A stretch of 64,000 bases of DNA from Macrostomum lignano (taxonomy: Eukaryota), in contig NIVC01001049.1 of the NCBI GenBank assembly GCA_002269645.1, positions 248,001 through 312,000 of the forward strand, written 5' to 3'. The translations under genes and the position numbers were made by a program. This document shows, in pieces, positions 8,477 through 44,258 of the stretch. Every line of letters starts with the position of its first letter. The stretch's first letter is position 1. A model generated the notes under the pieces. That model was not told the origin of the DNA and ran no database searches. It saw only the letters and a list, made by a program, of their open reading frames with translations.

Positions 8477-9689
8477 TCATCGTTGAAGTTTGAAGTACGC
8501 TCGTATAAGAAAATTTTCTACATCTAAAACAGCAAACAAAGGAAAGTTGAAAAGTTGCACGATTTGGTTTCGTCGGTTATTGTTGTCAACCACAATGCCA
8601 TCCTGGTCGTCGTCCATTGTGTCCAGCAGTTGTGCAGGAGCTTCTAGTTCGAGGTACGGCTGCCTATTTTGAAGCGCCAGGTTGTGCAGCACGACACAGC
8701 ACCGAAAAATATTTGCAGCGAAAATTGGTCGAACCTGCAGTGGACGCAGTAGACAACGCAATCGCTGCTTAAGAATGCCGATGGTGCATTCTACGATGCT
8801 TCTTGTGGCCTTGTGGGCCTCATTGAAACGGCGCTCCTGATCACTCTGTGGATTCAACAGCGGTGTAATGAGGTAGTCGTCGTTCCAGTAGCCGGAGTCT
8901 GCCAAAAGAAGGCCGCCAGGAACAGGACGCCATCCGCTTCTTAGACGCTGGGCGACGTGCGAATTGCGAAAAACTCTGGCATCGCTTACCGCACCCGGCC
9001 ATCTAGCAGTCGCGAAGTAGATTTTGTAATCAGGGCCACAGACAAGCATGGCGTTGATGGAATGGCGACCATGGCGGTTGACATATTGCTCTTCATTTAT
9101 CGCTGGTCGAAAAATCTCAATGTGCGTTCCGTCCACACAGCCGATCACGCACGGGAAGTTGGCTGTCAAGTTTTTGTTACAGACAACTGAATAGAACGAC
9201 AATAAATCAAGACTCACGTATAGCCGTACAAAATACTACTACGAGCGTACTTTAAAGTATTCCTATTTATAGACATCGTTTTACACTCACCTCTGGCTTG
9301 AAATCCCTCAACAACTGCTTGAAAGTCGGTAGGAAATTGAACGACATCAAAGTATATAGTGTCATTTACCGCCGTGACAAATCGATGAACTGTGTTAAAC
9401 ACAGTACTCTTTGAGACGCCATGAGCATCACCAACTACTTTGTAGTCCGTTCCGGTAGCTAGGAAACGAATTGATAGCCTGACTTGCTGCTCGGGTGTCA
9501 ATGCATGGTTCCGACGAGAAGGATGTTCAATAAGATGCCGAATTCTTTCAGTGAGATGAGAAAGCTGCTGCTCTGTTAGCTAAAGCGAGATTGCGTTTCC
9601 AAATCGCCCTCAAAGAAGTTTATTCGTTCCTTGAAGCGTCTGGGTCGACGAACTTCGCGTTCGAAGTCAGAATCTGAGTCAGAAAGCAT
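8477..9689 (-). pseudogene. Harbinger (HARBI1-like, DDE_Tnp_4) transposase, 2 exons, one early frameshift
   Basis: LSIRFLATG, FPCVIGCVDGTH, LADSGY and RSIVECTIGILKQR give the D-D-E triad. Intron 9290-9163; apparent 1-nt loss near 9580. Confidence 0.88.
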
Positions 9690-10038
9690 TATACTCCTAG
9701 GAACTCTGTGCATCAAATTCGGCCCTTGAACTCTTGACTAGGAGTAAGGAGGGCGGAGCAATTTCTTACTTGTTTATTGAACGTGCACGCCTAGAAATGG
9801 CTCCTAGCTGTTCTAAAAACACTCCTTACTCCTTGCAAAAACTCCTAGGTTTATTGAACACTACATACTTTAATTAGCACTCCTAAGTTCATTTAGGAGA
9901 CTCCTTGGCTGATTAAGAGTCTCCTTACTCCTAGCTAGGACTCCTAGTGTTTATTGAACAGAAAAACTGACTAGGAGCAAGGAGCTAGGATGCTCTTGAA
10001 GAATTAGGAGTCAAGAGTGTTTATAGCACAAGCCCCAG

Positions 10039-12240
10039 GGCCTGCAGCAGTGCTGATGAAAAGTTAGTACCCTTATCGCTCTGGATCTCCCTCGGGAATC
10101 CGGTCCTCACGAAGCAGTCCACCAATGCCTTCGCTACAGACTCAGCATCGATCTTTCGCAGCGGGACTCCTTCGGGGAATCGAGTAGCCGCATCGATAAT
10201 CGACAGGATGTACTGGTTACCACTCGCAGTCCTCGTATACGGTCCACTGATATCGATGATAACTTTGGTGAAGGCCTCCTCCACTCCAGGCACTTGGACT
10301 AGTGGTACCTTGTGATTGCCTGGGACTCGAGCCGTCTTCTGACACTTGTCGCACGTTGCTACGAAGTCCTTCACGTCCTTTGTCATCGTTGGCCACCAGA
10401 ATCGCTGTTCCAGTCGTTGACAAGTCTTCCTTGTTCCCAAGTGGCCAGCGAATGCACTCTCGTGGGCCTGGGACAGCGCCGTAGCACGCAGAGCCTTCGG
10501 AAGCACCAGTTGGTCCTCTCCAGCTGCTTGGTGCCGAAACAGTCGGCCGCGGCTTTCCTTCACCAAGTCGTTGGTTTGTACCGCTGCTTGCAACTCCTTG
10601 TCGTCTTGTAGGGCCGCCTCGTAATCCAATGTTATAGGGCGCATTGCAGTTTCTTGTCTCGTTTTCTTGTACTCTTGCCGTTGTTTACGCGCTTGGGCTC
10701 TAGTTATTCTTGATTTTGTTTTGCCAGCCGGCTCCGGATCGATCTGGTTAAGGCCGCTAGCCACGATGCCCTCCGCGAAGAGCCTCTCGTCCCCCTCTGA
10801 CTGGGGCATTGGGCGGTGCGGCGCACCCACCCCTTCTCTCTCATTGGCTAAGAGGGGTTGGCCGTGAACCCCCTCGCGCGTCTCTCTTCCAAGCACTGTA
10901 CTCGGGGCGTCTCCACCCTCCAACTTGAGCTGGCTAATCAAATCCAGTCCAACCAGCGCGCTTACGGGTAGTGAGTCAGCCACACAAACCTCAGTGGTTC
11001 TATTGTAGCCCTTTAGGTGCAGCTCCACTTTAGCGATTGGAAGACGGTGTAGGTCGCCGCCAAAACAACGCAATAGTGCATGATGTCCTGTCCAATTAAT
11101 GTTTTCAGGCAGACAGCTACGCCGAATCGTAGTTCGATCAGCTCCAGTATCCATCAGGAACCGCAGTTCTTTGCCATCCGCATGTCCGGTGATGAACCTG
11201 CCCGAAGCAGCATCCATAGCTCTTTCCTCTGAGGCCAAGTGGACATTGGCGGGCTTGTTGGTACACTGAAACTTCTTGTGGGGGCCTCCGTAGTTGAAGC
11301 AGCTAATCTTAGGCTTTAGGCTTTGCGGTCTCTGAATCGTCCTTTGTTTGTCCATAGCATTGGACGCCGTCGCCCCCTCAGCGGTCTCTTGGCTCGGGTG
11401 TCCTGGTGTTCCGCCGCCCTTGTCGCTGTTTCTTGCCATTGCGTAGTCATCGGCCAGTTTCGCAGCCTCTTTGATGTCCTTCGGTTTTCTCTCTCGCATC
11501 CACACCTGGAGTCCTTTTGTCAGAGAGTCCGTAAACTGCTCCAGAAGCACTTTCTGCCTGACGATGGAGTCGCCACTTATCAGTTCCTCTCTCTGATCCT
11601 CGTCCAGCCCAGCTGTCATCCATCGGACAAACAGGTCTTTCAGCTTTGTCGCGAACACCTGGAAGGTCTCTTCAGGCGCCTTCCGCAAAGACCGAAATCG
11701 CTGTCGGTAGGTCTCCTCGCCGATGTTGTATCTCGCTAAGATAGTCGCCTTTGCCAAGTCGTAGTCCGCGCTCGCCGCTGTCGTCAGACTGTGGAATGCG
11801 CTCTGCGCGACGCCCGTCAGTAGCGGTGCCAGCCGAATCGTCCACTCTGACTTTTGCCATCCACACGATGCCGCTGCCCTTTCAAAGGTCATCAGGAATG
11901 CCTCGATGTCATCAGAGTCCGTCAGCTTAAACAGCTTGGGCTCCACTGCTTGTGGTCGTGGCTTGGACTCGGCCAGGAGCTTCGTGAACTCCGCTTGCTG
12001 ACGAGCCAGTTGCTCCAGGTAGAATGCTTACTGTCTTTCTTGCGCGCGAGTCATTTCTTGTAGCTGCTGACTCTGGTGCGTCAGGAGCATCTTCATTGTC
12101 TCCATCAGATTCGCGCCCTCCAGCGTAGCTGAATCTTGGATTCCGCTGGCTTCTTCAGCATTGTCTTCGGAGCCTTCTCCGAGCGCCCCGTCTTGGGAAC
12201 ACAGGTTGTACGGGTGCTTCGAGCCCGCACCGCTGCCACC
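10039..12240 (-). pseudogene. Gmr1 gag (SCAN-like), protease and integrase N-terminal half
   Basis: DDIEAFLMTFERAA...RLAPLLTG; degenerate zinc knuckle; MDTGA protease motif; HESAFAGHLG...CDKC; IQSDKGTNF. In-frame TAA at 12028-12030. Confidence 0.88.
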
Positions 12241-12241
12241 A

Positions 12242-12400
12242 TGTTGCATTCTTGTAAATAAGTAAGAATGAGATGATTGTCCAAAGGCTCCTAACTGAGC
12301 CGCAACAAAGACAAAAACAAGTATCGCCCTCTGGCGCGCACCAGGTCTATTTATAGACTTATCAAAAATGGGGTGGCACAAAGAAAAGTCCACCGTCACA
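12242..12400 (-). repeat. 5' LTR of the Gmr1-type element
   Basis: Followed on the minus strand by the PBS TGGTGGCAGCGG. Confidence 0.95.
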
Positions 12401-12904
12401 GGTAAAAAGCCGCATCACCCCACAAGGACCAGTCTCGTGAAATCGACAAAAAAGGAAAATCCTTTAAAATAAATTTCCATAAAGCATCAAAATGCAGTCT
12501 GATGAAATGCGTTCGCATCAAGCCAAGGAAGCTCCAGAGAGAAGGTGTTCCCGCCAGCATCCCCGACAAGCAGCAGAGGCCGGTCGGTGGCTGTGAGGTG
12601 CAGCCCCAGGGTGGTAACCTCGTGGCCGTGCTCGAAGTGAGAAACCTGAGTGGGGGTTACAAAAATTGGCAAGAAGTTTGATTAGAAGCGAAATGAAAAA
12701 TCACTGCACGATGCCTGACCTCAACCAGCCGATTTGTCCCGCTCTGCATGCGCCAAATGCTGACTTTCCCTTGAGCAGAGGCCGTGGCCAGGAGCGGCAG
12801 GGCGCCCGTCAGGTCGCTCGTCAGCAGGCTGATGGCTCGTATCGGCCGGGTGTGGCACTGCGGAAAGGGAAACAAATGCTTCCAGGTGTTTTGATCGAAA
12901 AATC

Positions 12905-13605
12905 TGGGTGAGATCGGGTTGAAACCGGAATGAGATCGGAGTGAGATCTAGGTGAGATCGGGGTGAGATCGGTGTGGGATCGGTGTGAGATCGGTGTGAG
13001 ATCGGTGTGAGATCGGTGTGAGATCGGGGTGAGATCGGGTTGAGATCGGGGTGAGATCGGGTGATATCGGGTGAGATCGGAGTGAGATCGGGTGAGATCG
13101 TAGTGGGATCGTAGTGAGATCGTAGTGAGATCGGGATGAGATCGTAGTGAGATCGGGGTGAGATCGGGGTGAGATCGGTGTGAGATCGGGGTGAGATCGG
13201 GATGAGATCGAGGTGAGATCGGGGTGAGATCGGGGTGAGATCGGGGTGAAAACGGGGTGAGATCGGGGTGAGATCGAGGTGAGATCGGTGTGAGATCGGG
13301 ATGAGATCGGGGTGAGACCGGGGTGAGATCGGGGTGAGATCGGGGTGAGATCAGGGTGAAACCGGGGTGAGATCGGGGTGAGATCCGGGTGAGATCGGGG
13401 TGAAACCGGGGTGAGATCGGGGTGAGATCGGGGTGAGATCGGGGTGAAACCGGGGTGAGATCGGGGTGAGATCCGGGTGAAACCGGGGTGAGATCGGGGT
13501 GAGATCCGGGTGAGATCGGGGTGAAACCGGGGTGAGATCGGGGTGAGATCGGGGTGAGATCGGGGTGAAACCGGGGTGAGATCTGGGTGAGATCGGGTGA
13601 GATCT
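12905..13605. repeat. Minisatellite, 11-bp unit gagatcggggt, inside an intron of the TRAF-WD40 gene
   Basis: Direct tandem repeat with ggtgt/gggat/aaacc variants. Confidence 0.96.
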
Positions 13606-14124
13606 TGTGGAAATTCTGGGTGAATTTGGGGAGAAATGGAAAGCATCCTCACTTTCAGAATTGAACTTCAGCCTGCAGCAACTTGAAGCAATATTATAAG
13701 GTTAGAAATTCAGACATCAGATATTAAAAAAGAAACGCATTCACCATAAAACCCGTCAAGACGGGATGAATTTTCGCATCGGAGCCGAGTTTAACGATGG
13801 CGATCCGATTGCGACTTTGGCACCGAAACGCCACAATGGCAACTCCGGGACCGCAGCCTGCAGCGCACGCCTGAATCACTGGAGAAGCATCCGCCGCCAT
13901 CTCGTCGAAGCACTGGAAGGTTCGCCAGCCGCTGACAGCCATCCTGCCGTCCTGAGCCGTGTGCAGCTGAGCGGAGCGGAGCACAGGGCTACTGAGCTGG
14001 CGGGCCAGCAGCCACCCGGGCTCCAGAATCGGCAAAAACATCGGCGGGCCAGCCAGAGGGTCGAAACCGGTGAGCCCAAGCAGCGGCTGAAGACCTCCTT
14101 CGGCTGGCACCAGTGCGAGGCTTC

Positions 14125-17100
14125 TGAGGTGCCGGGCGTGTTTTGATGTACTGCACTGCACCTGACTCACCTGAGTCCAATTATGAGTAACTCTAACTAG
14201 CCAGCCAGCCTAACTAACCAAACCGGCCTACTCCGGTGTACGCTGCTCTGCGTACTTTTTCTCTCTCTCCCCCTTGACATGATAATATTCAGTAGTGATC
14301 GATTCTGAGTTTTAAGCCCACTTACTTGTTGTCTTTTAAGCCTATATATTGGTCTCGCCACCTACCACCTCGTATCTCACAATCATTGCAATAATTCGCT
14401 CATCTCAAATACACAACTTCGTACTTGACTCAAACCAAGCCCACGGGCGGCCTTGTCATCGTTTACTGGGCGCGACTTGACAATGGCGTCGCAAGCAAAC
14501 AACTCCGAACTAAACTTGGATGACCCAGACACAGCCGAAGCCTGGCTGCTCAGCTTTGCGGCTGCCGCACGAACCAAGAAACTGACGGACACAGAAGAAG
14601 ATCGGCAGATCACCGATCTATTCCTCGCCAGGGCAGGTCTCAAGGCACTGAGAACGCTGTCCCTCATGGCTGCCCCGACCAGCCTGGAGAAAAAAACATT
14701 TGAACAAATTCGAGACATCATCAAGGAGACAATCCGGCCCAAGAAGCGCCTCGATATTGCCGAACGAGCAAAATTCCTCGCCCTCAGGCAGGACCCAAGC
14801 GAAAGTGTCGCCTCCTACTACCGCCGACTCCGTGCAGCAGCGGCTACGTGTAGCTTTGAGAAGCTCGGGACGAAACAGTCAAGCGAGGACGAGCTCATCA
14901 CCATGCGGCTCGTGGACGGACTCGCCTCTGTGGACCACAAACATAGACTGTTGGAGAGAATGCAAGCTACCGACATGCTGCTGAACGAGGTGCTGCAAAC
15001 ACTTGAGCAACTTGAGCAAATCCGCTGCTACAACACCAGCACCGGGGCCGCTGCCAACACCGAGGCCAGCATCGCCTATGCAGGGCGGCGCGGCACGCCC
15101 CCACAGCCAGCGCCGGACACCAGACCACCGAGGAACATCAGCAAGACGAAGTGCCAATATTGCGGCGGTTTGCACCAGCAAGGCGCATGCCCTGCGTTCG
15201 GCAAGCGGTGCACCGCCTGCAACAAGAAAAACCACTTCGCTGCCGTATGCAGGTCCCGCACCGTGCATCTAGAGACCTGGGAGGAGAACGAAGGCGCCGA
15301 GATGGAGCGAGATACTGCCAACGTCTTCGTCATCAGACCGAAGCGCAGAGAGCGGAACGGCATCTTCCGGCAGGTAAAAATCAACGGCAAGGAGCTGCAA
15401 ATGCAGGTAGATACGGGCGCTGATGTGAGTCTCATTCCACGGGGCCACTGGGAGACACTTGGATGCCCAGCACTGAGGAAATCCAGACGAATTCTGAGAC
15501 AGTTCGACGGATCGATCATAAGAACCCTGGGAGAGTTCACTGCCACGTGGGATGACCAAGAAAAGTTCCGCACAGTCGACTTGGTGGTCACAGCAGCGCG
15601 CAAGTCACATGGACTGCTGGGTCTTGACAATCTGGATTGGAACCCCGAAGGCCAGGCAGCCAGTGCTCAGGATTCCGTAGTTCAACATCTCGATTGTCTG
15701 AAAGGCTTCCAGGCCAGGATCAAGCTGATTGAGGGTGCCAAGCCTTTCTACTGCGCAGCCAGAGCAGTGCCGCTGCACCTGCGTGACCGCGTCAATCAGG
15801 AGCTAAAGCGTCTCGTGACTGAGGGCATCATCGAGCCGGTGACGGAGGGCGGCAGCGAATGGGCGTCCCCGATCGTCTGCGTCCTAAAACCTAATGGCAA
15901 TGTCAGAATTTGCGCCGACTACAAAGCGGGGGTCAACCATCAGGTGTGCGGGGACACCTACCCCATGCCAACCGTCGAAACGATCTTCTCGGACGTTGCC
16001 GGAATGACTGACTTTGCCACTCTCGACCTATCTGACGCCTACTTACAGATCGAGCTCGAGGAGAAGAGCAGGGAGGTCACCACGATTGCAACTCCTTTAG
16101 GGCTGTTCCGCTACACCCGACTAGTGCCTGGCCTCAAGTCAGCATCCGCCATCTTTCAAAAGGCAATGGAGACCACCCTCGAGGACGTAAGCGGCAAGGT
16201 CATTTATCAAGACGACATCCTTATCGGAGGTCAATCTGCCGAGGGTCTCAAGGCCAAAGTTGATGAAGTAATCAAGACCCTACAGGCGGCCGGCATGAAT
16301 ATAAATCTCGCCAAATCCAACCTGGGGGCCAAGACAGTCAAGTTCCTGGGCTACAGAATCAGCGCAGACGGAATCTCGCCAGACCCCGGCCTGGTCAGCA
16401 AAATCATGGAGATCTCCGCGCCACGCGACCGTCGCCAGTTAGAGTCGTTCCTTGGTCTCTGCAATTTCTTCGGAAGGTTTGTCAACAACTATGCGCACGT
16501 TGTCGAGCCTTTGAACCAGCTGCGCAAGAAGGGAGCGGAGTTTGTGTGGGGAGCTGCGCAAGAAGCGGCCTTCCACCAGCTGAAGAAGCTTCTGAGCTCC
16601 GGCCCGATCATCCAGCCTTATGACCGAGCCAAAGAGACAACGCTGACGACAGACGCCAGTGAAAAGGCGGTGGCCGCCGTGCTCACGCAGGAAGGGCACC
16701 CCGTCATCTACTTCAGCCGGCGATTGACACAGGCGGAGGCGCGCTACTCCAACATCGAGCGGGAGGCTCTGGCGATTGTTTGGGCGATGGAGAGGGCTCG
16801 ACAGTTCCTTCTAGGCAAGCGTTTCACACTGCGAACGGACCACCGCCCTCTAGAGTTCCTGTTTGGAACAAGACAACAACTCCCCAAGGTCGCCAACGCT
16901 CGACTGCTTCGCTGGGCCATCCGCCTCATGGGGTTCGACTTCGCAATTGAGTACGTCCGAGGAGCCCAAATTCCGCACGCCGATGCGCTCTCCCGGCTCG
17001 ACTTTGCCGACGTTCCGGACGACCAGGCTGAAGCTGCGACTCACCACCACCACCTGGTGCATTGGGCTGGTGAAAGCGTCATTGGTTGGAATGAGCTAGC

Positions 17101-18757
17101 AGAGGAGACAAAACGTGACAGGCTGCTAGCAGATGTCATGCGCAGGATAGCCGGAAATCGCTGGTCGGGCTGCTCCCCTGCAGAGCGGCCCTTCAAGGCA
17201 ATTCGTCACGCGCTTACAATAGACGACTCGGTAGTGTGCTACGGAGACCGGCCAGTCATTCCCTCGTCTTTGCGAAGCCGCGTCCTGGAGTTGGTACACA
17301 GCGGGGCGCACCCCGGTGCCTCGAGCACACGAGCGCTGGTCCGCAACTCCGTCTGGTGGCCAGGCTACTGCGGCGACGTGGAAGGATTCGTCCGTGCCTG
17401 CCACACCTGCGCCAAGCAACGCCAAAGCGGCCACAGCAGCGTCCATCAATGGCCGGCCGACTCTGAACCCTGGGGACGCGTCCACATGGACCACGCTCAC
17501 GTCCCAAAGGTCGGGCTCCTGCTGGTCCTGGTCGACGCCATGTCCGCCTGGCCGGAGGCCGTCCGAGTGCCGGACAAGAGCGCCGCGACCGTCAGGAAGG
17601 TCCTCCAGGAGGTCTTCGCCCGCAATGGAGTTCCCCGAACCCTGGTGAGTGACAATGCTGCTGAATTTCATGATGAAGGGTTGGTGAGTTGGCTGAGCAG
17701 AATTGGCTGCCGCGCTGTGAAAACTCCGCCATACCACCCCCAGTCGAACGGCCTGGCTGAGCGCATGGTGCAGACGATCAAGGTGGCCTCGGCGGGCTGG
17801 GACCAGCAGGAGTCGTACGACGCGTTCCTCGCGCGGATTCTGCTAAACTACCGATGCGTGCCGCATGCCGGAAGAGAGTTCAGTCCAGCGCAGCTGATGG
17901 GCAGGCAGCTGCGGAACCCCATCACCATGAGAACAGCAATCCGGTCCGAGGTGTGGTACGCCCCAAGGAGAGGCGCGATCCCGGAAAAGGCAGAATTCCT
18001 AGCGCAGAAGGGATCCAACACGGCGCTGATCGTGCGACAAGGCAACAGAGTCACACTCGCCCACCTTGACCAACTTCGGCGAAACGAGCCTGACAACAAT
18101 GAGGGCGGCGCGACTGCGACAACCGACCTGAACGGCAACCTCCGCTCCGAGGGGGCGGCGAAGCCCGCCGACCTGCCAACAGTGACGCCCGGCAGCGACG
18201 GACCTCCGGTCTCGGCCACGTCAGAGCAGGTGGAGAACCAGCCGGCGGCGAGCTCAGTCCCGAGTACTCCCGAGTCCGGTGGCCACAACCGCTTAGCGGA
18301 GAGCAGAGCCGGAACTGACAAGGCGACTACGGCTCAGAGACCGAGCTACAACCTCCGAGCGAATCGAGGCGTGCCCCCGTTGCGATTCGAAGGGGGAGAT
18401 GAGGTGCCGGGCGTGTTTTGATGTACTGCACTGCACCTGACTCACCTGAGTCCAATTATGAGTAACTCTAACTAGCCAGCCAGCCTAACTAACCAAACCG
18501 GCCTACTCCGGTGTACGCTGCTCTGCGTACTTTTTCTCTCTCTCCCCCTTGACATGATAATATTCAGTAGTGATCGATTCTGAGTTTTAAGCCCACTTAC
18601 TTGTTGTCTTTTAAGCCTATATATTGGTCTCGCCACCTACCACCTCGTATCTCACAATCATTGCAATAATTCGCTCATCTCAAATACACAACTTCGTACT
18701 TGACTCAAACCAAGCCCACGGGCGGCCTTGTCATCGTTTACTGGGCGCGACTTGACA
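14125..18757 (+). mobile_element. Intact, very young Ty3/Gypsy LTR retrotransposon
   Basis: 358-bp LTRs at 14125-14482 and 18400-18757, identical by eye, TG...CA. 5-bp TSD GCTTC at 14120-14124 and 18758-18762. PBS TGGCGTCGC at 14484; PPT agggggaga at 18391-18399. Confidence 0.96.
14483..18421 (+). CDS. Gag-Pol polyprotein (gag, CCHC knuckles, PR, RT, RNase H, IN), uninterrupted
   Basis: Single ORF of about 1312 aa: VDTGA, WASPIV, YQDD, TDAS, TDHRPL, H-x3-HPG...CHTC, VHMDH, VSDN, NGLAER. Confidence 0.95.
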   Translation: MASQANNSELNLDDPDTAEAWLLSFAAAARTKKLTDTEEDRQITDLFLARAGLKALRTLSLMAAPTSLEKKTFEQIRDIIKETIRPKKRLDIAERAKFLALRQDPSESVASYYRRLRAAAATCSFEKLGTKQSSEDELITMRLVDGLASVDHKHRLLERMQATDMLLNEVLQTLEQLEQIRCYNTSTGAAANTEASIAYAGRRGTPPQPAPDTRPPRNISKTKCQYCGGLHQQGACPAFGKRCTACNKKNHFAAVCRSRTVHLETWEENEGAEMERDTANVFVIRPKRRERNGIFRQVKINGKELQMQVDTGADVSLIPRGHWETLGCPALRKSRRILRQFDGSIIRTLGEFTATWDDQEKFRTVDLVVTAARKSHGLLGLDNLDWNPEGQAASAQDSVVQHLDCLKGFQARIKLIEGAKPFYCAARAVPLHLRDRVNQELKRLVTEGIIEPVTEGGSEWASPIVCVLKPNGNVRICADYKAGVNHQVCGDTYPMPTVETIFSDVAGMTDFATLDLSDAYLQIELEEKSREVTTIATPLGLFRYTRLVPGLKSASAIFQKAMETTLEDVSGKVIYQDDILIGGQSAEGLKAKVDEVIKTLQAAGMNINLAKSNLGAKTVKFLGYRISADGISPDPGLVSKIMEISAPRDRRQLESFLGLCNFFGRFVNNYAHVVEPLNQLRKKGAEFVWGAAQEAAFHQLKKLLSSGPIIQPYDRAKETTLTTDASEKAVAAVLTQEGHPVIYFSRRLTQAEARYSNIEREALAIVWAMERARQFLLGKRFTLRTDHRPLEFLFGTRQQLPKVANARLLRWAIRLMGFDFAIEYVRGAQIPHADALSRLDFADVPDDQAEAATHHHHLVHWAGESVIGWNELAEETKRDRLLADVMRRIAGNRWSGCSPAERPFKAIRHALTIDDSVVCYGDRPVIPSSLRSRVLELVHSGAHPGASSTRALVRNSVWWPGYCGDVEGFVRACHTCAKQRQSGHSSVHQWPADSEPWGRVHMDHAHVPKVGLLLVLVDAMSAWPEAVRVPDKSAATVRKVLQEVFARNGVPRTLVSDNAAEFHDEGLVSWLSRIGCRAVKTPPYHPQSNGLAERMVQTIKVASAGWDQQESYDAFLARILLNYRCVPHAGREFSPAQLMGRQLRNPITMRTAIRSEVWYAPRRGAIPEKAEFLAQKGSNTALIVRQGNRVTLAHLDQLRRNEPDNNEGGATATTDLNGNLRSEGAAKPADLPTVTPGSDGPPVSATSEQVENQPAASSVPSTPESGGHNRLAESRAGTDKATTAQRPSYNLRANRGVPPLRFEGGDEVPGVF

Positions 18758-21149
18758 GCTTCTGTTGGTGAGGGCGACAATGGCCTGAGCGGATTCGGGA
18801 ACTGCGCACATGGCCGCCACAGGTGAGTTGCCTTGAGGCAGCTCCGCCTGTCCAGTGCTCAAGAGGTGCTCCAGCTCAGCATCAGTGTCGCACAGATACC
18901 CCTCCGGGCACCGGAGTCGCACGAGTCCATTCAGATTCTCCCAGCTGGCCAACAGAATGTCAGATGCCGGAGACACCAGACAGAAAATTGGACCCCAACT
19001 CGCAGGGGCCCGGACTCGACTCTGGAGACGCATTGAGTCGAGGTGCCACAGCACCGCGATTCCGTCCGCGCCTCCCGAAACAAAAATCTGCCGCCCGTCT
19101 AGAGAGCAGGCAGACGTGACTCGGCCAGCATGGCCCCGACTGAACACCAGCTCGGACAGCAGCTGTTTCGGCCTGCCCAGCATTCGGACAGGCGAGTCGG
19201 CAGCAATGGAGTTGCAAATTGGCTAAAAATGTGGAATGAGCTCAGTGACAGGACTTTCGTCTAAATGAATAAAGATGCAGATGAGTTAAAAAATCGCAAA
19301 GCAGCTCACATTCTGCAACTGCAGAGCTCCACCCAACGCATGCGGCCTGTGAAGGAACGATGCAGAGCTCACAGGCGATTCTACCGGATCTTGGCAGGGG
19401 TCTCGCGGCACGGAGGCCAGCTGTGCGTCGTGTCGGCTTCGGTCGCCCACAGGAGCGTCCATGGCCTGCCGTCGGCCACTGAAAACAGCTGACCAGCGAT
19501 GAAAGGAAATTTTTGAGTAGCAGTGCATAAAATTTGTCTCAATAATAGAATTCCTTAACCCTACACCATACTGACATACCAGAATTCGAATGAGATATCG
19601 CTGTCTGCTTCAGTTTCGAGTCCATGAGCTCAAGGTGAGAGTCCACGGTTTCCCTGTAGTGCCTCTCCAGACCGGACCTGCGCACCATCGCCCTGCAGCC
19701 CAGGTGAGAGTACTTGCACTCTACCGGTCTCTCGGGACACTCCGACAGGTGAGCAACATATCCCCGCCTGTCCATCGGTGTGCTCCGCTCCGAGCAGTGA
19801 GGACAGCGAGCTGAGAATCTCGGACAGCACACATCGGACTGCAGATTCCTGTGACTGGTCTCCATCTCGCTGTGTGTGACCAGCTGAGAGCACAGGTCGC
19901 AGGTCTCCTTCCTGTGGCGACACTCGCTGCTGGTGTGTCGCTGCATGTCCTTCTTCAGGATGAGCTCTTTGCACTGCTCACAGCGGAGTGAGTGCCAGTC
20001 GCAGCTCTGTTGCACATGCTGGTCCATGCGAGCCCATTCGAGTTGGACAGAGCAGCCGGCGTCGCAGTTCGGACAGCGGACTCGCAGCTTGGCGACCTCG
20101 CGTCTCGTCGCCATGTCGGGAAAGCAGGTAGCCTGGCTCACCTTGATCTCGACCCCGCCGCCAGCGTCCTCCTCCGAGTGGTGGTCTCTGAGTGTGCAGG
20201 CCTCGGTGTGTTCGGGACAGGGCCGCTTCTCCACCTCGTGCAGCAGGCCGGTGACGCAGGCCTGGCACAGGCGGCACCCATGCGGAGTCTGTCGGGCGTT
20301 GAAGAGCGGCTTGGAGCAGCTGCTGCACTGCAGGTGAGCCGGTAGATCGGAGACCGGCCTCGCTGCCGACACTCGCTGGGGAAGTTCCAACTGGTGCATG
20401 TCTGGGAGAGAGGGCTTAGTTTATTATAAACTGCTATGATATTGTCAGATTGCCTGAAAATCTGTTGGTTTATTTGCTTTTCTTCTTCAGTTGGAGTTTT
20501 CTGAAAGTTCAGATATAAAACTTTATGCTTGGGGGGTGGTGTCTTTTTGAAACCAAGTACTTTTCCTTTGTCAACTGAGATTGCGGCGTCACCTTCCATT
20601 AGCGGACACAAAACAACGTGTAGTACCGCATCGCTACATTTCTATCATATGGCAATAGAAAATCAAAACAACAAAGTCTATAGCGTCAGTTTCTCCCATG
20701 TAATAAGAATTTCTCCCCAGTCTCACAGTCACCATGAAGCTGCAGTAGAGAGCGCGGTAGCCTTTGTTCTAGATCACTAAGTATACAGTATTTAGGAGCG
20801 CGCCAGATTCAAGCTAAAATGCATTCCGCTTGGTGCACTGCATACAAAACTACCCTGGATTGTTATACGAGCTAAAAACTTTCCTGGATTGAGCCCTGTG
20901 CTATTTTTATCACGGCGTGTGATTTATTGTTAGAACCATCACACACTTGTCTTTGGGAAGTTCCGACTGAGACATGCGTCACTGAGAAGGGCCTAAATTT
21001 CTATAACAAAATAAATAAACCGCAGTGGTATTGTCTGATTGTCAAAAGCGTCGCAACGGTTGTTGGGCGACTGCGACTCGTTGCCTCTTCTGGCTGTCAT
21101 CCAGATGATGCGGCACCCATCGTGCAGTGACCCTCTGCAGCCCCAGGTC

Positions 21150-21450
21150 CTCTATGAGAATTCAGTGGATGCTGGATGAAGGAATTCCACTGAGTTCTGC
21201 CCTTTCTTCGCACATCCCATCGCGGATCGATTACTAGCAGACCACCGATGAGCTCGAGGTTGTTCTCGGTCCGCAATTCCCAAGTGTCTCCCGGATCTTT
21301 GCTCGTCCACGCTCGAAGTGCAGCCGCTCTTGAAGCGATCGCACCGCTTGCACACAGCGCTGGCACACTGCATCCCTGCCGTACGCGTCTACAAGCTGCC
21401 GGTGGACTTGTGCAGCTGGTGTTCCTTGCAACCATTCAATTTTTATGCAA
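21150..21450 (-). mobile_element. Degenerate mariner/Tc1 transposase N-terminal fragment
   Basis: QGTPAAQVHRQLVDAYGRDAV, then shifted frames CDRFKSGCTSSVDEQRSGR and TENNLELIGGLLVIDPR, follow the mariner HTH pattern. No TIRs identified. Confidence 0.6.
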
Positions 21451-21794
21451 CATCGCCTTGGCTTTATCCTTGGCTTCTACAGATCCATTTATTCAAACAG
21501 CAGTTTGATCTTGAATAATGGAAATAAATTTTAGACGATTTTAAAATTTTGTCTAATTCACACTGGTCCTGCTGATCCCTTGCGCCCTCCCCTCCTCCGC
21601 GCCGCGCTCCGCCGCATGCCGTGGGGTTTTTAACCTCTCCTATTTTCAGGCTTGGCCATGACGCTGCGTTCCTGCGCTGTTTGGAATTTTATCTAAACTT
21701 TTACAGCCTATCGAAAAAAATTTCTTTAGAAACTGGAGTCGGTTTGGGTGCCTGAACTTAAAGCAGAGAATTTAACGAACTTGAAAACTCTGAG

Positions 21795-22768
21795 AGGGCG
21801 TCAGCTACAGAAGAGGCGCCAGCTACAGAAGGGGCGCCAGCTACAGAGGGGCGCCAGCTACAGAGGGGCGCCAGCTACAGAAGGGGCGCCAGCTACAGAA
21901 GAGGCGCCAGCTACAGAAGAGGCGCCAGCTACAGAGGGGCGCCAGCTACAGAAGAGGCGCCAGATACAGAGTAGCGCCAGCTACAGAAGAGGCGCCATCT
22001 ACAGAGGGGCGCCAGCTACAGAGGGGCGCCAGCTACAGAGGGGCGCCAGCTACAGAAGGAGCGCCAGCTACAGAAGAGGCGCCAGATACAGAGGGGCGCC
22101 AGCTACAGAGGGGGCGCCAGCTACTGAAGGGGCGCCAGCTACAGAGGGGGCACCAGCTACAGAAGAGGCACCAGCTACAGAAGAGGCGCCAGCTACAGAA
22201 GAGGCGCCAGCTACAGAAGAGGCGCCAGATACAGAGGGGCGCCAGCTACAGAGGGGGCGCCAGCTACTGAAGGGGCGCCAGCTACAGAGGGGCGCCAGCT
22301 ACAGAAGGGGCGCCAGCTACAGAAGAGGCGCCAGCTACAGAAGAGGCGCCAGCTACAGAGGGGCGCCAGCTACAGAAGAGGCGCCAGATACAGAGTAGCG
22401 CCAGCTACAGAAGAGGCGCCATCTACAGAGGGGCGCCAGCTACAGAGGGGGCGCCAGCTACAGAAGAGGCGCCAGCTACAGAAGAGGCGCCAGCTACAGA
22501 AGGAGCGCCAGCTACTGAAGGGGCGCCAGCTACAGAGGGGGCGCCAGCTACAGAGGGGGCACCAGCTACAGAGGGGGCACCAGCTACAGAAGAGGCGCCA
22601 GCTACTGAAGGGGCGCCAGCTACAGAGGGGGCGCCAGCTACTGAAGGGGCGCCAGCTACAGAGGGGGCGCCAGCTACAGAAGAGGCGCCAGCTACAGAAG
22701 AGGCGCCAGCTACAGAAGGAGCGCCAGCTACAGAGGGAGCGCCAGCTACAGAGGGGGCGCCAGCTACA
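21795..22768. repeat. Minisatellite, 17-18-bp unit agctacaga(a/g)g(a/g)ggcgcc
   Basis: Direct tandem repeat; it explains the ORFs at 21748-22872. Confidence 0.96.
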
Positions 22769-24782
22769 GGGGGGTGTCTCCGCAGACTGGGATGTCTCTG
22801 ACCTGTTGTCAGCACTGCTGACATCGGGGCGTGCGGTGCAGAAAGAAAGAGAGAGAGTGAGAGCTGCTGCATCGGCCTAGAGACGTACGACTCTGATGAT
22901 AGTAGTATTCATATCATTTTAACGGTGTTTGCTTTCAAATCAAAATAGTCATTGACCATTTTGACGACTAATGCTCATGAATATTTTTAGCCCAGAATTC
23001 CATATACTAAAAATGAAAATGACAACTAAAATCTGTTCTATTTTTAGACAATTCACATATCTGCGCGATTTATATAAACAGACGCACATAGCACATCACG
23101 TGATTATTCTCTCTCACCCATTACGACTATTTAAGCCAGTTGTGGAAAGCGTAGAACTTACGTTTGACATTGAAAAGCTCGCTTGCTGTTTAAAAGAATC
23201 CTGCGGCTGTTTGAGTTGGCAGAAGATAGGCTTTTTTAAATTTGAGCATTTAAAACTACGATTATAATAAATCGTAGTTTAGAAACAAAGCAGTTTGTTA
23301 TTAAAGTCACAATAATCTTAATCAGGTAACTGACTAGAATTAGGCTATAAATTTTATCTATCAATTGCTCGCGAGTCTCATGTACGACGTACTTGCTTCA
23401 TTTTTGAGTAAAGAAATACACTGCAGTTTGGAAGTTTTCTTCAGTGAAACGGTGAAACTTGATTTCTTTGCTTAAATGAGCTTGGTTGGCTTTTTCATTG
23501 TTTTTGCGGCCAATAGTCTTATTACTCAATGTCTTTATTTTATATACTTTTTTATGTTTTATGCCGCGCAACTGCGGACTTTCGTGTCTTGGATTTAACT
23601 AGGTTAACTGGAACAAAAACGACTTTGTTAAAGAATTTAGAATTTTTATTAGGCAATTTATAATAGTCGTTGTCAATTGCCAGAACAGCAGAGGTCACAA
23701 CAGCCTTTAATTTGACCCTTCCGGCTCTCTTTTAGGCCTATCAGTTGCTTCTCAAATCCGACAGGTGAGCAAATCTTCCAGCATAAGCCTTCATCTCAAA
23801 GTTTTAATTAGTTGTAGCTACCCCTGATTTTGCAACTTCGAAACTGTTAGATTAAGATTATAGAAATAATTCCCACAAGACGCGTCAACATTTCGTATTG
23901 AGAACAAAAACGATTGTGTGACAAATGTTTTTAACGCCTTAAAAAGTAATTAAGTTTTTTTGTTCGATGAAGTCTGGTGAAAACGGTAAAAGTTTTATGA
24001 ATATTGGACATAATGGTAGATTGCGTAGTAGGTAAGGGACTGAAATAATGGCCAAACAAAGTCTATGGCACATAGAGGCCATTATTTCAGCATAGCGTAG
24101 TCTGACGGCCATTATTTCAGCGTGCCGGAAGCGGTCATTATTTCACACTTTTTATCACGCTTTAATTGGCTGTTTTGAGAGTTATTTTACCCATAGATGA
24201 CTGAGATGTGTGTCTTAGTTTGACCATAGACAACACTGTGATGAGTGCCGATTTCGTTTGCGTCTTGCAAGAAATCAGGAAAGTGGGTAGTACGAGTAAA
24301 AGCTATTTGTCTTGTCAAGCAACTATGGCTGGTGCATCTCGTCAAACAGCCCCGCTTATTAATTGGAATATCTTCTTGTCGATGACTGAACGAACCGTTT
24401 TTTCAGTGTATTCCAGAATTCCATGTAGACTGTTTGCGATTATTCTCATATGTCAGTTAATAAATGCATATTTAACTAATCGTTTATGGTTCAAACGCCT
24501 GCTAAAGCTGAAATAATGGCCAGTTGAGTTTGTCATTACACCAGGCTGTGCCTTATGGACAATGGCATGACACTAGTAACAGGCCAATTTTACCTAAACG
24601 AATCTCTAAAAATTTTTGTGCCAAAATGAGTCATGAGCAAGCTTCCGTGTTTTATGGACTCAGCACGCAGCTAAAAAGGAACATTGCAGCGTTTGATGAC
24701 AAAAACAGAGCCACACCCTTTCACAAAAACGCCTAAAGTTTTTAATAAAAGACTTCTCACTTTTCAGCAGGACACATGCGTC

Positions 24783-26022
24783 ATGTCAGAACTTCCAGAG
24801 CGAGTGTCGGGAGCCCGACCGGTCTCCGATCTGCCGGCTCACCTGCAGTGCAGCAGCTGCTCCAAGCCGCTCTTCAACGCCCGACAGACTCCGCACGGGT
24901 GCCGCCTGTGCCACGCCTGCGTCACTGGCCTGCTGCACGAGGTGGAGAAGCGGCCCTGTCCCGGACACACCGAGGCCTGCACACTCAGAGACCGCCACTC
25001 GGAGGAGGACGTTGGCGGCGGGGTCGAGACCGAGGTGAGCCGAGCTACCTGCTATCCCGACATAGCGACGAGACGCGAGGTCGCCAAGCTGCGAGTCCGC
25101 TGTCCGAACTGCGACGCCGGCTGCTCTGTCCAACTCGAATGGGCTCGCATGGACCAGCATGTGCAACAGAGCTGCGACTGGCACTCACTCCGCTGTGAGC
25201 AGTGCAAAGAGCTCATCCTGAAGAAGGACATGCAGCGACACACCAGCAGCGAGTGTCGCCACAGGAAGGAGACCTGCGACCTGTGCTCTCAGCTGGTCAC
25301 ACACAGCGAGATGGAGACCAGTCACAGGAATCTGCAGTCCGATGTGTGCTGTCCGAGATTCTCAGCTCGCTGTCCTCACTGCTCGGAGCGGAGCACACCG
25401 ATGGACAGGCGGGGATATGTTGCTCACCTGTCGGAGTGTCCCGAGAGAACGGTAGAATGCAAGTACTCTCACCTGGGCTGCGGGGAGATGGTAAGCAGGT
25501 CCGATCTGGAGAGGCACTACAGGGACAGCATGGACTCTCACCTTGAGCTCATGGACTCGAAGCTCAAGCAGGCAGCTGTTGTTCCATCGAATTCTGGTAA
25601 GCTTTTCTGTTGAATAATAGCAAAGATCAATGTGCGCTAATACATTAAGGTGGTTGGATGCGAATGTTTTGTTGGTCGCTATTGCAATAATGTTTAATTG
25701 TTCATTTCCAGCAGCTGCGGTCCCGCAGTCCTCTGTCGGTGCCGCAGCTCCCACCGCCACTACCGCCGACGGTCGCGAGGTGGCCGATGTGAAGCGGCGA
25801 GTCGGCAGCGTCTTCGAGCAGTTCAAGAAGCTGCAGGTCAACGTGGCGAACTGGGCTCACAGCACCATGGAGCTCGAGCAGCTGGCTGACAGGTTCGGAG
25901 GCGTCTCGCAGCTGCGGACTCTGCTGAGCGGACTGGACGAGCGGACAAGGAACGTCGAGCAGCTGCAGCAGCAGGTGCAGCAGCTCCAGCAGCAGGTGCA
26001 GCAGCTGCAACAGAGAGCTTGA
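24783..26022 (+). CDS. TRAF-like copy 2: RING + TRAF zinc fingers + coiled coil, no MATH domain (about 373 aa)
   Basis: Exons 24783-25596 and 25715-26022, phase 1. CSSC...QTPHGCRLCHAC; YPDIATRREVAKLRVRCPN..GC; repeated C-x2-C...H...C fingers; QQQVQQL heptads, then stop. Confidence 0.85.
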
Positions 26023-26409
26023 TGCTTAAAATTTTCAACGAGGAAAAAATGTGTGCATTCGATTGCTTCATTGCATCGTACCTAATCGGCCAGTATCGAT
26101 GTGATGTTTATGAATGAGAAAAAGCCTTTGACGATTATTATTCAGATAGAAATGTGAGTTTTTTCCAGCAAACTGATCAAATCCGAGTCGGGTTTTAAGT
26201 TTTGAATATTTAAAAACCTATTTAAAATTTTAAGCAGTTTTAAAACACTTTCCTGACTTCGTTGACAGAACATTTTCGTGCAATTGTTATCAACTAATAA
26301 ACAAGTGTTTTGATATCCTCAGAGTGTGCCCGACTCTGAAGTCCGCGCTGACCGCTTCAGTATATTCTGAATTTTTACATGTACTAACCTTCCAGTCGGC
26401 CTCTACGAG

Positions 26410-27424
26410 CTACTGAGGTCTCCAGTGTGCACTTGCCCACCTAAGTCTGCACTGAGGTCTCCAGTGTGCACTTGCCCACCTAAGTCTGCACTGAGGTCTC
26501 TCCAGTGTGTACTGCCCACCTAAGTCTGCACTGAAGCCTCTCCAGTGTGTACTGCCCACCTAAGTCTGCACTGAAGTATCTCCAGAGTGTACTGCCCACC
26601 AAAGTCTGCACTGAAGTCTCTCCAGTGTGCACTGCCCACCTAAGTCTGCACTGAAGTCTCTCCAGTGTGTACTGCCCACTTAAGTCTGCACTGAGGTCTC
26701 TCCAGTGTGTACTGCCCACCTAAGTCTGCACTGAGGTCTCTCCAGTGTGTACTGCCCACCTAAGTCTGCACTGACGTCTCTCCAGTGTGTACTGCCCACT
26801 TAAGTCTGCACTGAGGTCTCTCCAGTGTGCACTTGCCCACTTAAGTCTGCACTGAGGTCTCTCCAGTGTGTACTGCCCACCTAAGTCTGCACTGAAGCCT
26901 CTCCAGTGTGTACTGCCCACTTAAGTCTGCACTGAGGTCTCTCCAGTGTGTACTGCCCACCTAAGTCTGCACTGAGGTCTCTCCAGTGTGTACTGCCCAC
27001 CTAAGTCTGCACTGAAGTCTCTCCAGTGTGTACTGCCCACCAAAGTCTGCACTGAGGTCTCTCCAGTGTGTACTGCCCACCAAAGTCTGCACTGAAGTCT
27101 CTCCAGTGTGTACTGCCCACTTAAGTCTGCACTGAGGTCTCTCCAGTGTGTACTGCCCACCAAAGTCTGTACTGAGGTCTCTCCAGTGTGTACTGCCCAC
27201 CAAAGTCTGCACTGAAGTCTCTCCAGTGTGCACTTGCCCACCTAAGTCTGCACTGAAGTCTCTCCAGTGTGTACTGCCCACCTAAGTCTGCACTGAAGTC
27301 TCTCCAGTGTGTACTGCCCACCTAAGTCTGCACTGAAGTCTCTCCAGTGTGCACTGCCCACCTAAGTCTGCACTGAAGTCTCTCCAGTGTGCACTGCCCA
27401 CCTAAGTCTGCACTGAAGTCTCTT
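26410..27424. repeat. Minisatellite, 40-bp unit taagtctgcactgaggtctctccagtgtgtactgcccacc (about 25 copies, some 41 bp)
   Basis: Direct tandem repeats with no unique spacers. Confidence 0.96.
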
Positions 27425-27429
27425 CACTG

Positions 27430-27720
27430 CATTCCAAGTGCAGTAAGGTTAATTTGAGGCTAAATTGGAATCTCAGCTTGGCTCTGCTCGGCAATTAACA
27501 CCCTTGATGGCCAACCCCCAAGGTGCAGTAAAGTGTACATGCCTAAAGATAAATAAAGTGAGAATCCTGTGTGTGTGTGTGTGTGTGTGCCTGTGCAAAT
27601 GACTGCCTGCTCAGAGGAGTCGGCGGAATGGGCAGTAATGCCTCTCACCGGCTGTGTCACATTGTCGATTAAAGTGCAGCGCGCCAGGGTGCATACAGCC
27701 CCCCTGTCTCTACAAAAAGG
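27430..27720 (+). mobile_element. tRNA-derived SINE, copy B (5' truncated)
   Basis: Body homologous to 50-350 and to the reverse complement of 41320-41620; internal (TG)n expansion. Confidence 0.72.
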
Positions 27721-28149
27721 CTCAGTTCTTCATGTCCAGTTAACTCGCAATCTGTGCCCCTCCCGGTGGGGAGGCAAAAAAGGAATAAAAATAAGAGTAA
27801 CTGCAGGGGGCATGTAGATTTTGACTTTGTACAATTTAGAGTTGCTATACTCTCGTTTTATTATTATCTAAAGGAAAATTATGTTTAAAGCAAAAATCAT
27901 GCGCTCTGACGCCAGCTATCTTAGCCTAAGATATGGGATCCCATGAGCTTTTGCTCCATCTGCCCACGGTTGTGTTCCGTGCCTTTTAGGCCTCGCTTTG
28001 AGCTGAGATTGCTTGTTCTCGCGGCGTTGAATTTTTTTTGTGTTCATATTACAATAAAATATACCTTGACGGGCTCGATTGTGCCACCTGTGTTCTCACC
28101 AAGCGCTTTTCGTTGTCTCCCTTCCTGCCATAGAGCTAACAGCATTACA

Positions 28150-28690
28150 CGAATACCTCCATGAGCATTGAGATCACAGCAATTTCCCACATGAACCTTG
28201 CTATTTCACCAATTCTCACTGACCCACAGAATTTCAGCGATTTCCCCATGAGCCTTGGCATCGCAGCAATTCCCCCCTGAGCCTTGGCATCTCAGCAATT
28301 CCCCCCTGAGCCTTGGCATCTCAGCAATTCCCCCCTGAGCCTTGGCATCTCAGCAATTCCCCCCTGAGCCTTGGCATCTCAGCAATTCTCCCCTGAGCCT
28401 TGGCATCGCAGCTATTCCCCCCTGAGCATTGGCATCTCAGCAATTCTCCCCTGAGCCTTGGCATCTCAGCAATTCCCCCCTGACCCTTGACATCTCAGCA
28501 ATTCCCCCACGATCCTTGACATCTCAGCAATTCCCCAAGAACCGGAAACCGGAAAATTTCTGATCGAACAGAACAAGTTTCATGAAAATCGGTTGAGCCG
28601 TTTTTTTCTGAAATTAATCGCATACCTACCTAGATACCTAGATACTCGTAGATAGAGAAAACTCATTTTAACATACCGGGTATGTTAAGG
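28150..28690 (+). mobile_element. Possible non-autonomous Helentron/DINE-like element
   Basis: Tandem array, then aagtttcatgaaaatcgg, a short cctagata microrepeat and a 21-bp palindrome ttaacatacc-g-ggtatgttaa (28668-28688). The 5' end is not defined. Confidence 0.4.
28250..28530. repeat. About 29-bp tandem array gagccttggcatctcagcaattccccct (about 10 copies)
   Basis: Direct tandem repeat. Confidence 0.92.
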
Positions 28691-29432
28691 CTGATCACAT
28701 TTATATGTAGACTTTAAACCCTTTTATCGTCCATATCAAGTGTGGCCCAGTGAATGTTTATTGCATTATCTTCTGCTTAAGTAGTCCTTGCTATTAATAC
28801 TATTTTATTTCATGATTACTCATTACTGTTCCCCGCTCTCATCTTAAAAAAGCGATTTGTCGGCCAGCTATTCAGACGAGCATTCTAAATTTCTATTTAG
28901 AATGAGCGGCTTCATGCCTTCAGGCCTCGCCCAGAACTGAAAAAACACAGCTCACTTGTCCTGTTTATCTGGCACACGAGGCTTCACTCGTGGCCGGGTT
29001 TTGATTCTAAAAATAGAACTTGCGTTTCCAGACAGGCAATTTGACTGAAATAAATTGAATGTACACTGCATGTGTGGGACTGACAAGTACACTGGGTACG
29101 TGTTGGAGTTTACATTTGGAACAGGACGTATCTTATTTCCCTACACACACGTACGTTATAAGCTAGACTTTTAATAAGCAAGATATGTGATGTTCAAATT
29201 AATGGAATTTTCCACAACTAGCAGTCATTTCCGTCACGTGACTTTCAGTCATAGAAAGCATGATTGCTTTTTATTAAGTCTGTCAGGATAGCAAGAGCTG
29301 AAAAAAGCCGAGACTGGCTCGCATTGTTCACTAACAAGTGAACCTAAAGTAAATGCGACATCAGCCAAGTGAATTCCTGCAACAGCTTATCACAAAAGCA
29401 GGGTTTTATCCAGCGGCACCTCCAACTCATTG

Positions 29433-30188: not shown

Positions 30189-30779
30189 CGCCGCACCGCT
30201 CAAAGACGCGCGGCACTTCTTGTACAAATGTTAATAGGAGCGTAAATTGCCTGACAACTGAATTATTGTAGTGTACGATTGATTGTATAATTTGTAAAAA
30301 ACGATAAGCATACAGTCATAATACTTGACATTGTATTGTACTGTACAGAATGTAAAAATAGAAACGAAAATACACCTGAGAGCCATGTTTTTTGCCACGG
30401 TGGCAGCTCTCCACAGCGCGGCTTTTCCATGGAAATGCCTTTGGCCATTGTACAGTTCCAACGAATCATGTGACAGAAATGTCTATTTTAAGCAGCCGCC
30501 AGCAAGGGCAGCCAGGCCAGGCGGACTGCGACCTGAAGTTGGCTGCCGAGCTCGAACTCAACTCAAGCAGGAAGCAAGTGCGTGGCTTCTCTGTTATAAT
30601 CATACTTCAGTATTTGCTGAAAGGGATAAAAAAATTAAGCTCAGCATCGCCTCAGCAACTGCCCTCCCATCGCCCACCCTGCCAGCCCCGGGTCTCCAGG
30701 TTGAAAGCAGCTCCAACAGAAAGTACATCTGCGGTTGGCGATTTTCTCAGAGACGAATTTGTGAATGTGAGAGTGGATA

Positions 30780-33780: not shown

Positions 33781-33846
33781 TGACCATGCATGGTCACTAT
33801 GCATGGTCACTATGCATGGTCACTATGCATGGTCACTATGCATGGC
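33781..33846. repeat. 13-bp tandem repeat tgcatggtcacta (about 5 copies)
   Basis: Direct repeat. Confidence 0.9.
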
Positions 33847-41690: not shown

Positions 41691-41899
41691 TCCCGTTAGT
41701 GTGAAAGTCAAAATTGTAATTGTAATAATTGTAATTGTAATAGACGAAATTACAATTACAATGCATATCTCAAAACTACACAGTGCAATGTTTTTGGTAA
41801 ACTTACGAACGTATTATTCACACCAATAAAAGCAGCTGATTCACACCATAGATTCGAGTCGAGCCTGCCTCAATCGTTTTCACTGCATAGTTTCCAATT

Positions 41900-44251: not shown

Positions 44252-44258
44252 GCCTGGC

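Follow-up and report, generated by a model that had tools for sequence, protein, structure and literature searches.

COP1/RFWD2, RFWD3, and PRP19 are ubiquitin ligases in which a RING or U-box domain is combined with WD40 repeats. In TRAF7, a RING domain and one TRAF zinc finger precede a coiled coil, which is followed by 4-7 WD40 repeats (PMC7179693), and expansions of TRAF genes are known in free-living flatworms (PMC6109357). In this study, we analyzed 64,000 nucleotides (nt) of the genome of Macrostomum lignano (contig NIVC01001049.1, positions 248,001 to 312,000; hereafter, the window), which carry on the minus strand a gene with a TRAF-like first exon followed by WD40-like exons. The gene is a real, expressed, and lineage-specific chimera of TRAF-type zinc fingers and a WD40-like part, and it is TRAF7-like in layout only. 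The locus is probably a chimeric gene of the Macrostomum lineage, in which the TRAF-like exon 1 is cis-spliced to four unrelated linker and WD40-like exons.

The five exons joined to 2136 nt encoding 711 amino acids (aa) and ending in a TGA stop, with GT-AG sites at every intron (Table 1). The lengths, phases, splice sites, and arithmetic of the five-exon minus-strand model given in the earlier note (820, 179, 840, 138, and 159 nt) were all reproduced. Exon 3, for which that note gives 840 nt, nevertheless spans 5,478 nt in the window (19222-13745), where it is split into 465 and 375 nt by a long terminal repeat (LTR) retrotransposon of 4,633 bp, absent from the note, and by a duplicate of the target site GCTTC. 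The 711-aa frame closes only when the retrotransposon and one copy of the target site are taken out; when the window was read without interruption, the open reading frame (ORF) ended 7 codons beyond the insertion point to give 496 aa. The C-terminal half of the gene occurred once in the window. Within intron 3, the minisatellite (12902-13604) consists of about 64 copies of the 11-nt unit ATCGGGGTGAG.

The exon junctions were examined against public proteins, and the proteins predicted from the window were 93-100% identical to M. lignano entries in UniProt and GenBank. When the C-terminal 438 aa were used as the query, the sole matches were two M. lignano fragments, P0001 and P0002, both named 'WD_REPEATS_REGION domain-containing protein' in UniProt. 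Both fragments were continuous over the insertion site (…ALTNRSLALVPAEGG…, also in P0007) and over the exon 3/exon 4 and exon 4/exon 5 junctions; an exact look-up gave no genomic-context record for either. The junction region, used as the query, matched P0003, whose cluster includes P0009 and P0007, and the junctions of exon 2 recurred in P0003, P0008, P0009, and P0007. P0009 (A0A1I8J792) was 100% identical to the window over aa 208-356, which covers the exon 1/exon 2 and exon 2/exon 3 junctions. P0007 corresponds to GenBank PAA78657.1 ('hypothetical protein BOX15_Mlig012340g1, partial', 684 aa), which starts in exon 1, covers the sequence up to the end of exon 3, and continues into intron 3. 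Three independent ML2 gene models cover exons 1, 2, and 3, and all four exon junctions were reproduced among public M. lignano proteins, in support of the proposed in-frame fusion of a TRAF-type exon to a WD40-like C-terminus. The gene had been described as hidden, whereas GenBank and UniProt already contain it in the form of partial hypothetical proteins; a literature search for 'Mlig012340' returned nothing on it.

PAA78657.1 comes from an annotation based on RNA sequencing (RNA-seq) and a de novo transcriptome, in which experimentally mapped spliced-leader sites served to divide the transcriptional units (PMC5730564). The public RNA-derived models favor cis-splicing to the acceptor at 19488. 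PAA78657.1, A0A1I8J792, A0A1I8G688, A0A1I8G7W2, and A0A1I8G632 belong to the same gene family as the window gene and have the same junctions, and all but A0A1I8J792 were 93-95% identical to it. In contrast to the window gene, all of these models are partial and lack the retrotransposon, and PAA78657.1 mixes two tandem copies.

These tandem copies, A and B, lie about 14 kb apart in the region NIVC01000672.1:67465-103878 of the Mlig_3_7 assembly, and both are without the retrotransposon. The five exons and their GT-AG sites recurred in each of them, and the ORF was intact at 708-709 aa. Intron 1 of the window gene, which showed no similarity to intron 1 of the paralogs, was kept in both copies (88 nt). 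Across the three gene copies, exons 2-5 were equal in length without insertions or deletions (indels), indels were found in introns 1 and 4, and those in exon 1 were multiples of three; intron 3 measured 887, 820, and 643 nt. The upstream flank of the window gene resembled that of copy A (99.3% identity) and the downstream flank that of copy B (98.3%), and only one gene copy lies between these flanks. The window is a structural variant of the region holding A and B. A recombinant origin of the window copy was also considered; a simple hybrid of A and B was unsupported by the numbers of differences in the WD part (25 between window and A, 37 between window and B, and 34 between A and B). As for the A-to-B join in PAA78657.1 (positions 10001-26414 of the region), it is either an annotation chimera from multi-mapping reads or real read-through splicing between the tandem copies.

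The inserted element lies antisense within exon 3 and resembles Ty3/gypsy elements in its paired TG..CA LTRs, its 5-bp target-site duplication, and the order gag, protease, reverse transcriptase, RNaseH, and integrase in one ORF, whereas it differs from them in being compact (4.6 kb) and in that its gag ATG is immediately adjacent to the 5' LTR. Pfam matches in the ORF were RVT_1, RT_RNaseH, rve, Integrase_H2C2, gag-asp_proteas, and Retrotrans_gag, and a polypurine tract precedes the 3' LTR. The insertion site was empty in copies A and B (assembly GCA_002269645.1), where the alignment closed at the target site; hence, the insertion is a presence/absence polymorphism. The insertion into the window gene is very recent and the element is apparently active. 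With its interrupted frame, the window copy of the fusion gene is a null or truncated allele, with intact copies elsewhere in the species.

Table 1 Positions of the fusion gene, the inserted element, and the TRAF-like paralogs in the window.
Feature	Position	Strand	Remarks
Exon 1	19580-20399	minus	820 nt, ATG at 20399, ends in phase 1, aa 1-273
Intron 1	19489-19579	minus	91 nt, GT..AG
Exon 2	19310-19488	minus	179 nt, Pro/Ser/Arg-rich linker, aa 274-333
Exon 3, 5' part	18758-19222	minus	465 nt, includes blades 2-3 and, at aa 357-395, the sole canonical WD40 repeat
Exon 3, 3' part	13745-14124	minus	380 nt with the second target-site copy; original exon 375 nt (14119-13745)
Intron 3	12858-13744	minus	887 nt, mainly 11-nt minisatellite
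Exon 4	12720-12857	minus	138 nt, WD40-like blade (…ATASAQGKVSIWRM…), exon junction seen in P0001/P0002
Exon 5	12487-12645	minus	159 nt including TGA stop at 12489-12487, last blade
Ty3/gypsy-type LTR retrotransposon	14125-18757	plus	4,633 bp, antisense within exon 3
LTRs	14125-14482 and 18400-18757	plus	358 bp each, 100% identical, TG..CA ends
Target-site duplication GCTTC	14120-14124 and 18758-18762		5 bp
gag-protease-RT-RNaseH-integrase ORF	14453-18421	plus	Intact, 1,322 aa, single ORF
Paralogs c2 (ATG 24783), c3 (31972), c4 (37275), and c5 (43057)	24783-44380	plus	Intact, two exons, 366-378 aa; gene spans 24783-26100, 31972-33290, 37275-38600, and 43057-44380
c6, sixth TRAF-like copy	49270-50568	minus	Probable pseudogene, deletions in exon 1 shift the frame
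Inverted TRAF-like fragment	44306-44533	minus	

Exon 1 encodes a variant RING (C-x2-C-x11-H-x-C-x2-C-x2-C-x12-C-x2-H) followed by five TRAF-type zinc fingers, which were seen as C-x2-C…H…C/H units at aa 109-254. The encoded protein matched Pfam zf-TRAF (2.6e-9), and the closest solved structures to the N-terminus were RING and zinc-finger constructs of TRAF6 (about 1e-10). The N-terminus aligned with the TRAF6 RING with H-x-C in place of C-x-H (QTPHGCRLC vs QTPCGHRFC), and eight possible zinc ligands were present. No Pfam match to the MATH domain was found in the fusion protein. The window holds six copies of exon 1 and one fragment, and copy 1, that of the fusion gene, was 92.6-97.5% identical to the five others, in agreement with the near-identity noticed earlier. 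The similarity of copy 1 to its paralogs ended within 3 nt of the exon-1 donor and was confined to exon 1. In the five other copies, of which c2-c5 are intact, an exon for the RING-like domain and five zinc fingers is followed by a phase-1 intron and a Q-rich coiled-coil exon, again with no MATH domain, and the two-exon TRAF-like proteins P0004-P0006 had only PF02176 in precomputed Pfam lists.

A pyrimidine tract and AG were found 2-20 nt upstream of every TRAF-like ATG (e.g., 20402-20412 and 24760-24782), and the similarity between the copies started there. This looks like a spliced-leader or 5' untranslated region acceptor, which would account for the lack of shared sequence further upstream. 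In a homologue search with the full-length model, P0160 (UniProt A0A1I8GMY3, 603 aa) was the sole match listed, and no relative outside the species was among the matches listed. P0160 joins two TRAF-like copies in one model, and its C-terminal domain is a different one (PF21039); the TRAF-like family may therefore hold further C-terminal variants.

The confinement of paralog similarity to exon 1 is consistent with the origin by domain (exon) shuffling that had been proposed. The parent family of the N-terminal part was identified, with similarity stopping at the phase-1 donor; a parent of the WD part was not found. The further suggestion of a young chimera, drawn from the identity of exon 1, is not warranted by that identity, since exons are near-identical throughout the family while introns are at random-level identity. 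The TRAF-like exons were 91-98% identical, with about 290 nt almost invariant in ten copies, and the identity of intron 1 in the family was 51-62%, as compared with about 50% for shuffled sequences, with one exceptional pair at 84%. Exon 1 of the three fusion copies was 97.4-98.5% identical among themselves and up to 97.5% identical to non-fusion copies, i.e., no closer, except for the diagnostic 3' end …ISHSNS, which is partly common to c2. This pattern suggests exon-restricted homogenization, presumably by gene conversion, in the TRAF-like family, by which the date of the fusion would have been erased. The fusion is older than the split of its three copies, which differ by about 2-4% over the exons and short introns. 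The exact end of similarity at the exon-1 donor was also considered as an RNA-mediated breakpoint; it is uninformative, as the whole family loses similarity at exon borders.

The C-terminal half, with about 380 aa of strongly diverged WD40-like sequence beyond the linker, was compared with WD40 profiles, structures, and sequence collections. Pfam matches to this half were all sub-threshold: WD40 scored 23.7 bits at aa 362-392 (the Pfam cut-off is 27), and several beta-propeller models weakly matched aa 546-697. Comparison with a WD40 alignment by hhalign gave a probability of 89% (E 2e-6) over three blades, with a whole-length alternative alignment at 81%, and the result for the C-terminal half of the WD part alone was weak. 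In a search of solved structures, the WD part gave single-repeat matches only, to designed WD proteins, RACK1, and G-beta. The C-terminal sequence parses into seven units of about 45 aa, and profile support covers about three N-terminal and two C-terminal blades; a seven-blade beta-propeller is plausible on this sequence evidence. Among 1.84 billion representative proteins, the only close relative was P0002, and the rest were generic multi-WD40 proteins mostly matching the first repeat. The nearest WD relatives outside the species were multi-WD40 proteins of 1,000-1,700 aa, and Pfam found TRAF or RING domains in none of the 10 generic relatives checked.

Several findings weigh against a cis-spliced chimera of TRAF and WD40 parts. 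The acceptor used in the model (ggtcag/CTG, exon start 19488) is in frame and does not fit the spliced-leader acceptor motif of M. lignano, [T/C]TNCAG (PMC8629364), and a stronger-looking acceptor that fits the motif (ttttcag/TGG, exon start 19478) is located 10 nt downstream. PAA78657.1 takes exon 1 from copy A and exons 2-3 from copy B across an 'intron' of about 14 kb, and is consequently a somewhat weaker proof of the 88-91-nt intron 1. No Pfam RING model matched the N-terminus (E<=1). The central part of the WD region (aa 445-600) was without detectable WD signal, and AlphaFold2 on the C-terminal 378 aa, with an alignment of three near-identical sequences, gave a predicted local distance difference test score (pLDDT) of 37. 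The WD40 assignment of the earlier note was accordingly retained in part: about three of the seven putative blades are solid, as aligned by hhalign, and the remaining blades are not. Neither a stand-alone parent of the WD part nor an ortholog outside M. lignano was found, including among the 1.84 billion representative proteins. The ratio of nonsynonymous to synonymous substitution rates (dN/dS) of the WD part was 0.57-1.13 among the three copies with few differences, so that constraint on the WD half is not demonstrated.

There is some chance, though a clearly minor one, that the gene is a transcribed but functionless chimera, which arose by accidental juxtaposition in a repeat-rich and recently duplicated genome and is decaying neutrally, the retrotransposon being part of the decay. 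The dN/dS of the WD part, the degenerate WD repeats, and the lack of an ortholog would fit such a decay, as would the disruption of the gene in the window and the frame shifts in the neighboring copy c6. However, the three copies, which are 2-4% apart, all keep ORFs of 708-711 codons with no stop or frameshift, and their indels are multiples of three in exon 1, missing in exons 2-5, and present in the short introns. Furthermore, the dN/dS of the TRAF exon among the three copies was 0.30-0.43, and expression was sufficient for RNA-seq assembly.

If the gene is a cis-spliced chimera, a TRAF exon with its splice donor would have come to sit upstream of a WD gene, and the 5' acceptor of the WD gene would then have been used as a cis acceptor for the donor of the TRAF exon. 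According to a passage in PMC8629364 that cites Conrad et al. 1993, an upstream cis donor suppresses trans-splicing; it would follow that a TRAF exon lying in front of a WD gene subject to trans-splicing takes over the acceptor of that gene. The product would combine a RING/zinc-finger ubiquitin-ligase or adaptor module with a beta-propeller, rather than a coiled coil or MATH domain, as the partner-binding end. A more elaborate version, which we put forward tentatively and consider rather unlikely to hold in all its parts, is outron capture: a duplicated TRAF exon and its donor would have been placed in front of an orphan WD gene expressed by trans-splicing, and the outron would have become the 91-nt intron. 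This would have produced a ligase of RING, zinc fingers, and propeller independently of TRAF7, functional in several copies, with the TRAF exon still homogenized by exon-restricted gene conversion.

Alternatively, the locus may hold two genes in one transcriptional unit, in which the WD mRNA is trans-spliced at 19478 and starts at M283, the TRAF exon is a truncated paralog, and the fusion is a precursor or a minor isoform. We regard this arrangement as unlikely. It draws on the second acceptor, which, unlike the first (GGTCAG), fits the spliced-leader motif, and on an in-frame ATG in exon 2 (M283, MDAPVG...), which lies 16 nt past this acceptor and is kept in all three copies. Used in trans, the acceptor at 19478 would give a WD-only mRNA. 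Used in cis, it gives a truncated TRAF-only product; the early stop predicted for an alternative acceptor near 19480 was thereby confirmed (AG at 19480-19479, exon start 19478, stop after 305 aa). In M. lignano, polycistronic precursors make up about 7% of transcriptional units, and trans-splicing affects about 39% of genes (PMC5730564), and an open in-frame junction would be expected by chance in about 1 in 5 cases. On the other hand, the annotation pipeline, which cuts at mapped spliced-leader peaks, kept exons 1-3 in one ORF, and the three independent ML2 models cover the same exons. In addition, the upstream cis donor would act against trans-splicing as described in the passage cited above, and the terminal ATG of the spliced leader would not share the frame of the WD ORF, whichever of the two acceptors is used.

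Other features of the window were as follows. Just downstream of the fusion gene, a 641-aa ORF (10021-11946, minus) is a retroelement fragment in which a SCAN-like gag domain is accompanied by a retroviral protease and an integrase, and reverse transcriptase is missing. A Harbinger-type DDE_Tnp_4 transposase ORF (8477-9217, minus) and a gag/aspartic-protease ORF of another retroelement (62492-63709, minus) were also found. Between the TRAF-like copies, a single-exon ORF of 564 aa (39030-40724, minus) matches the amiloride-sensitive sodium channel family (ASC/DEG-ENaC, 1.6e-29). A tandem array of an 18-mer (about 55 copies) occupies 21796-22769, one of a 40-mer (about 25 copies) occupies 26419-27423, and one of a 29/87-mer occupies 28152-28536; the 40-mer array is longer in the region holding copies A and B.

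If the fusion protein is functional, the gene would be a clean and datable case in which the TRAF7 layout was assembled convergently out of an expanded TRAF family, and would show how spliced-leader acceptors could ease gene fusion. The five-exon model also corrects the public models, all of which are partial or mixed, and the analysis draws attention to a presence/absence polymorphism in which one copy is knocked out by an apparently active LTR retrotransposon. In other respects, the gene is a lineage-specific chimera of an ordinary kind, in a genome that is rich in repeats and recently duplicated.

It is highly improbable that the window gene is a flatworm ortholog of TRAF7: the order of a RING-like domain, a TRAF zinc finger, and a WD40-like part with no MATH domain would agree with orthology, but five zinc fingers stand in place of one, the coiled coil is absent, exon 1 is 93-98% identical to the adjacent coiled-coil TRAF-like genes, and the single canonical WD repeat is accompanied by generic nearest relatives, in which TRAF or RING domains were seen in 0/10 checked. 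The fusion was set apart from TRAF7 by the published layout and by nearest relatives, and not by direct alignment to a TRAF7 sequence. It shares with TRAF7 the TRAF-type zinc finger and the lack of MATH/TRAF-C, along with a RING-like N-terminus and a WD40-like C-terminus. By contrast, where TRAF7 has its coiled coil, the fusion has a Pro/Ser-rich linker (exon 2, in which 7 of the 60 aa are Pro and a heptad pattern is absent), its RING carries H-x-C whereas TRAFs have C-x-H, and its WD repeats are mostly unrecognizable. The two halves are also of separate history, exon 1 being from the local family and the WD part an orphan: the N-terminal half was nearest to the local coiled-coil TRAF-like genes and, among solved structures, to TRAF6, and the C-terminal half to generic multi-WD40 proteins. 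These separate histories indicate that the TRAF7-like layout is convergent, and the view of the earlier note that the protein is convergently TRAF7-like rather than a true TRAF7 was borne out by the zinc fingers, the missing coiled coil, and the generic matches of the WD part. We infer that the fusion product may be a functional analog of TRAF7 with an independent origin.

Compared with the neighboring TRAF-like genes (e.g., BOX15_Mlig029665g1 and Mlig005209g2; c2-c5 in the window), the fusion gene has an exon 1 of 93-98% identity with the same position of the phase-1 donor, whereas their Q-rich coiled-coil exon is replaced by four unrelated exons. Its N-terminus has the RING and five zinc fingers of classical TRAFs (TRAF2/3/5/6), but their coiled coil and C-terminal MATH/TRAF-C are lacking in the fusion protein. 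With COP1/RFWD2, RFWD3, and PRP19, no sequence relationship was detected, and the N-terminus of the fusion is of TRAF type; nonetheless, the fusion has in common with these ligases the logic of an E3 module joined to a beta-propeller substrate receptor.

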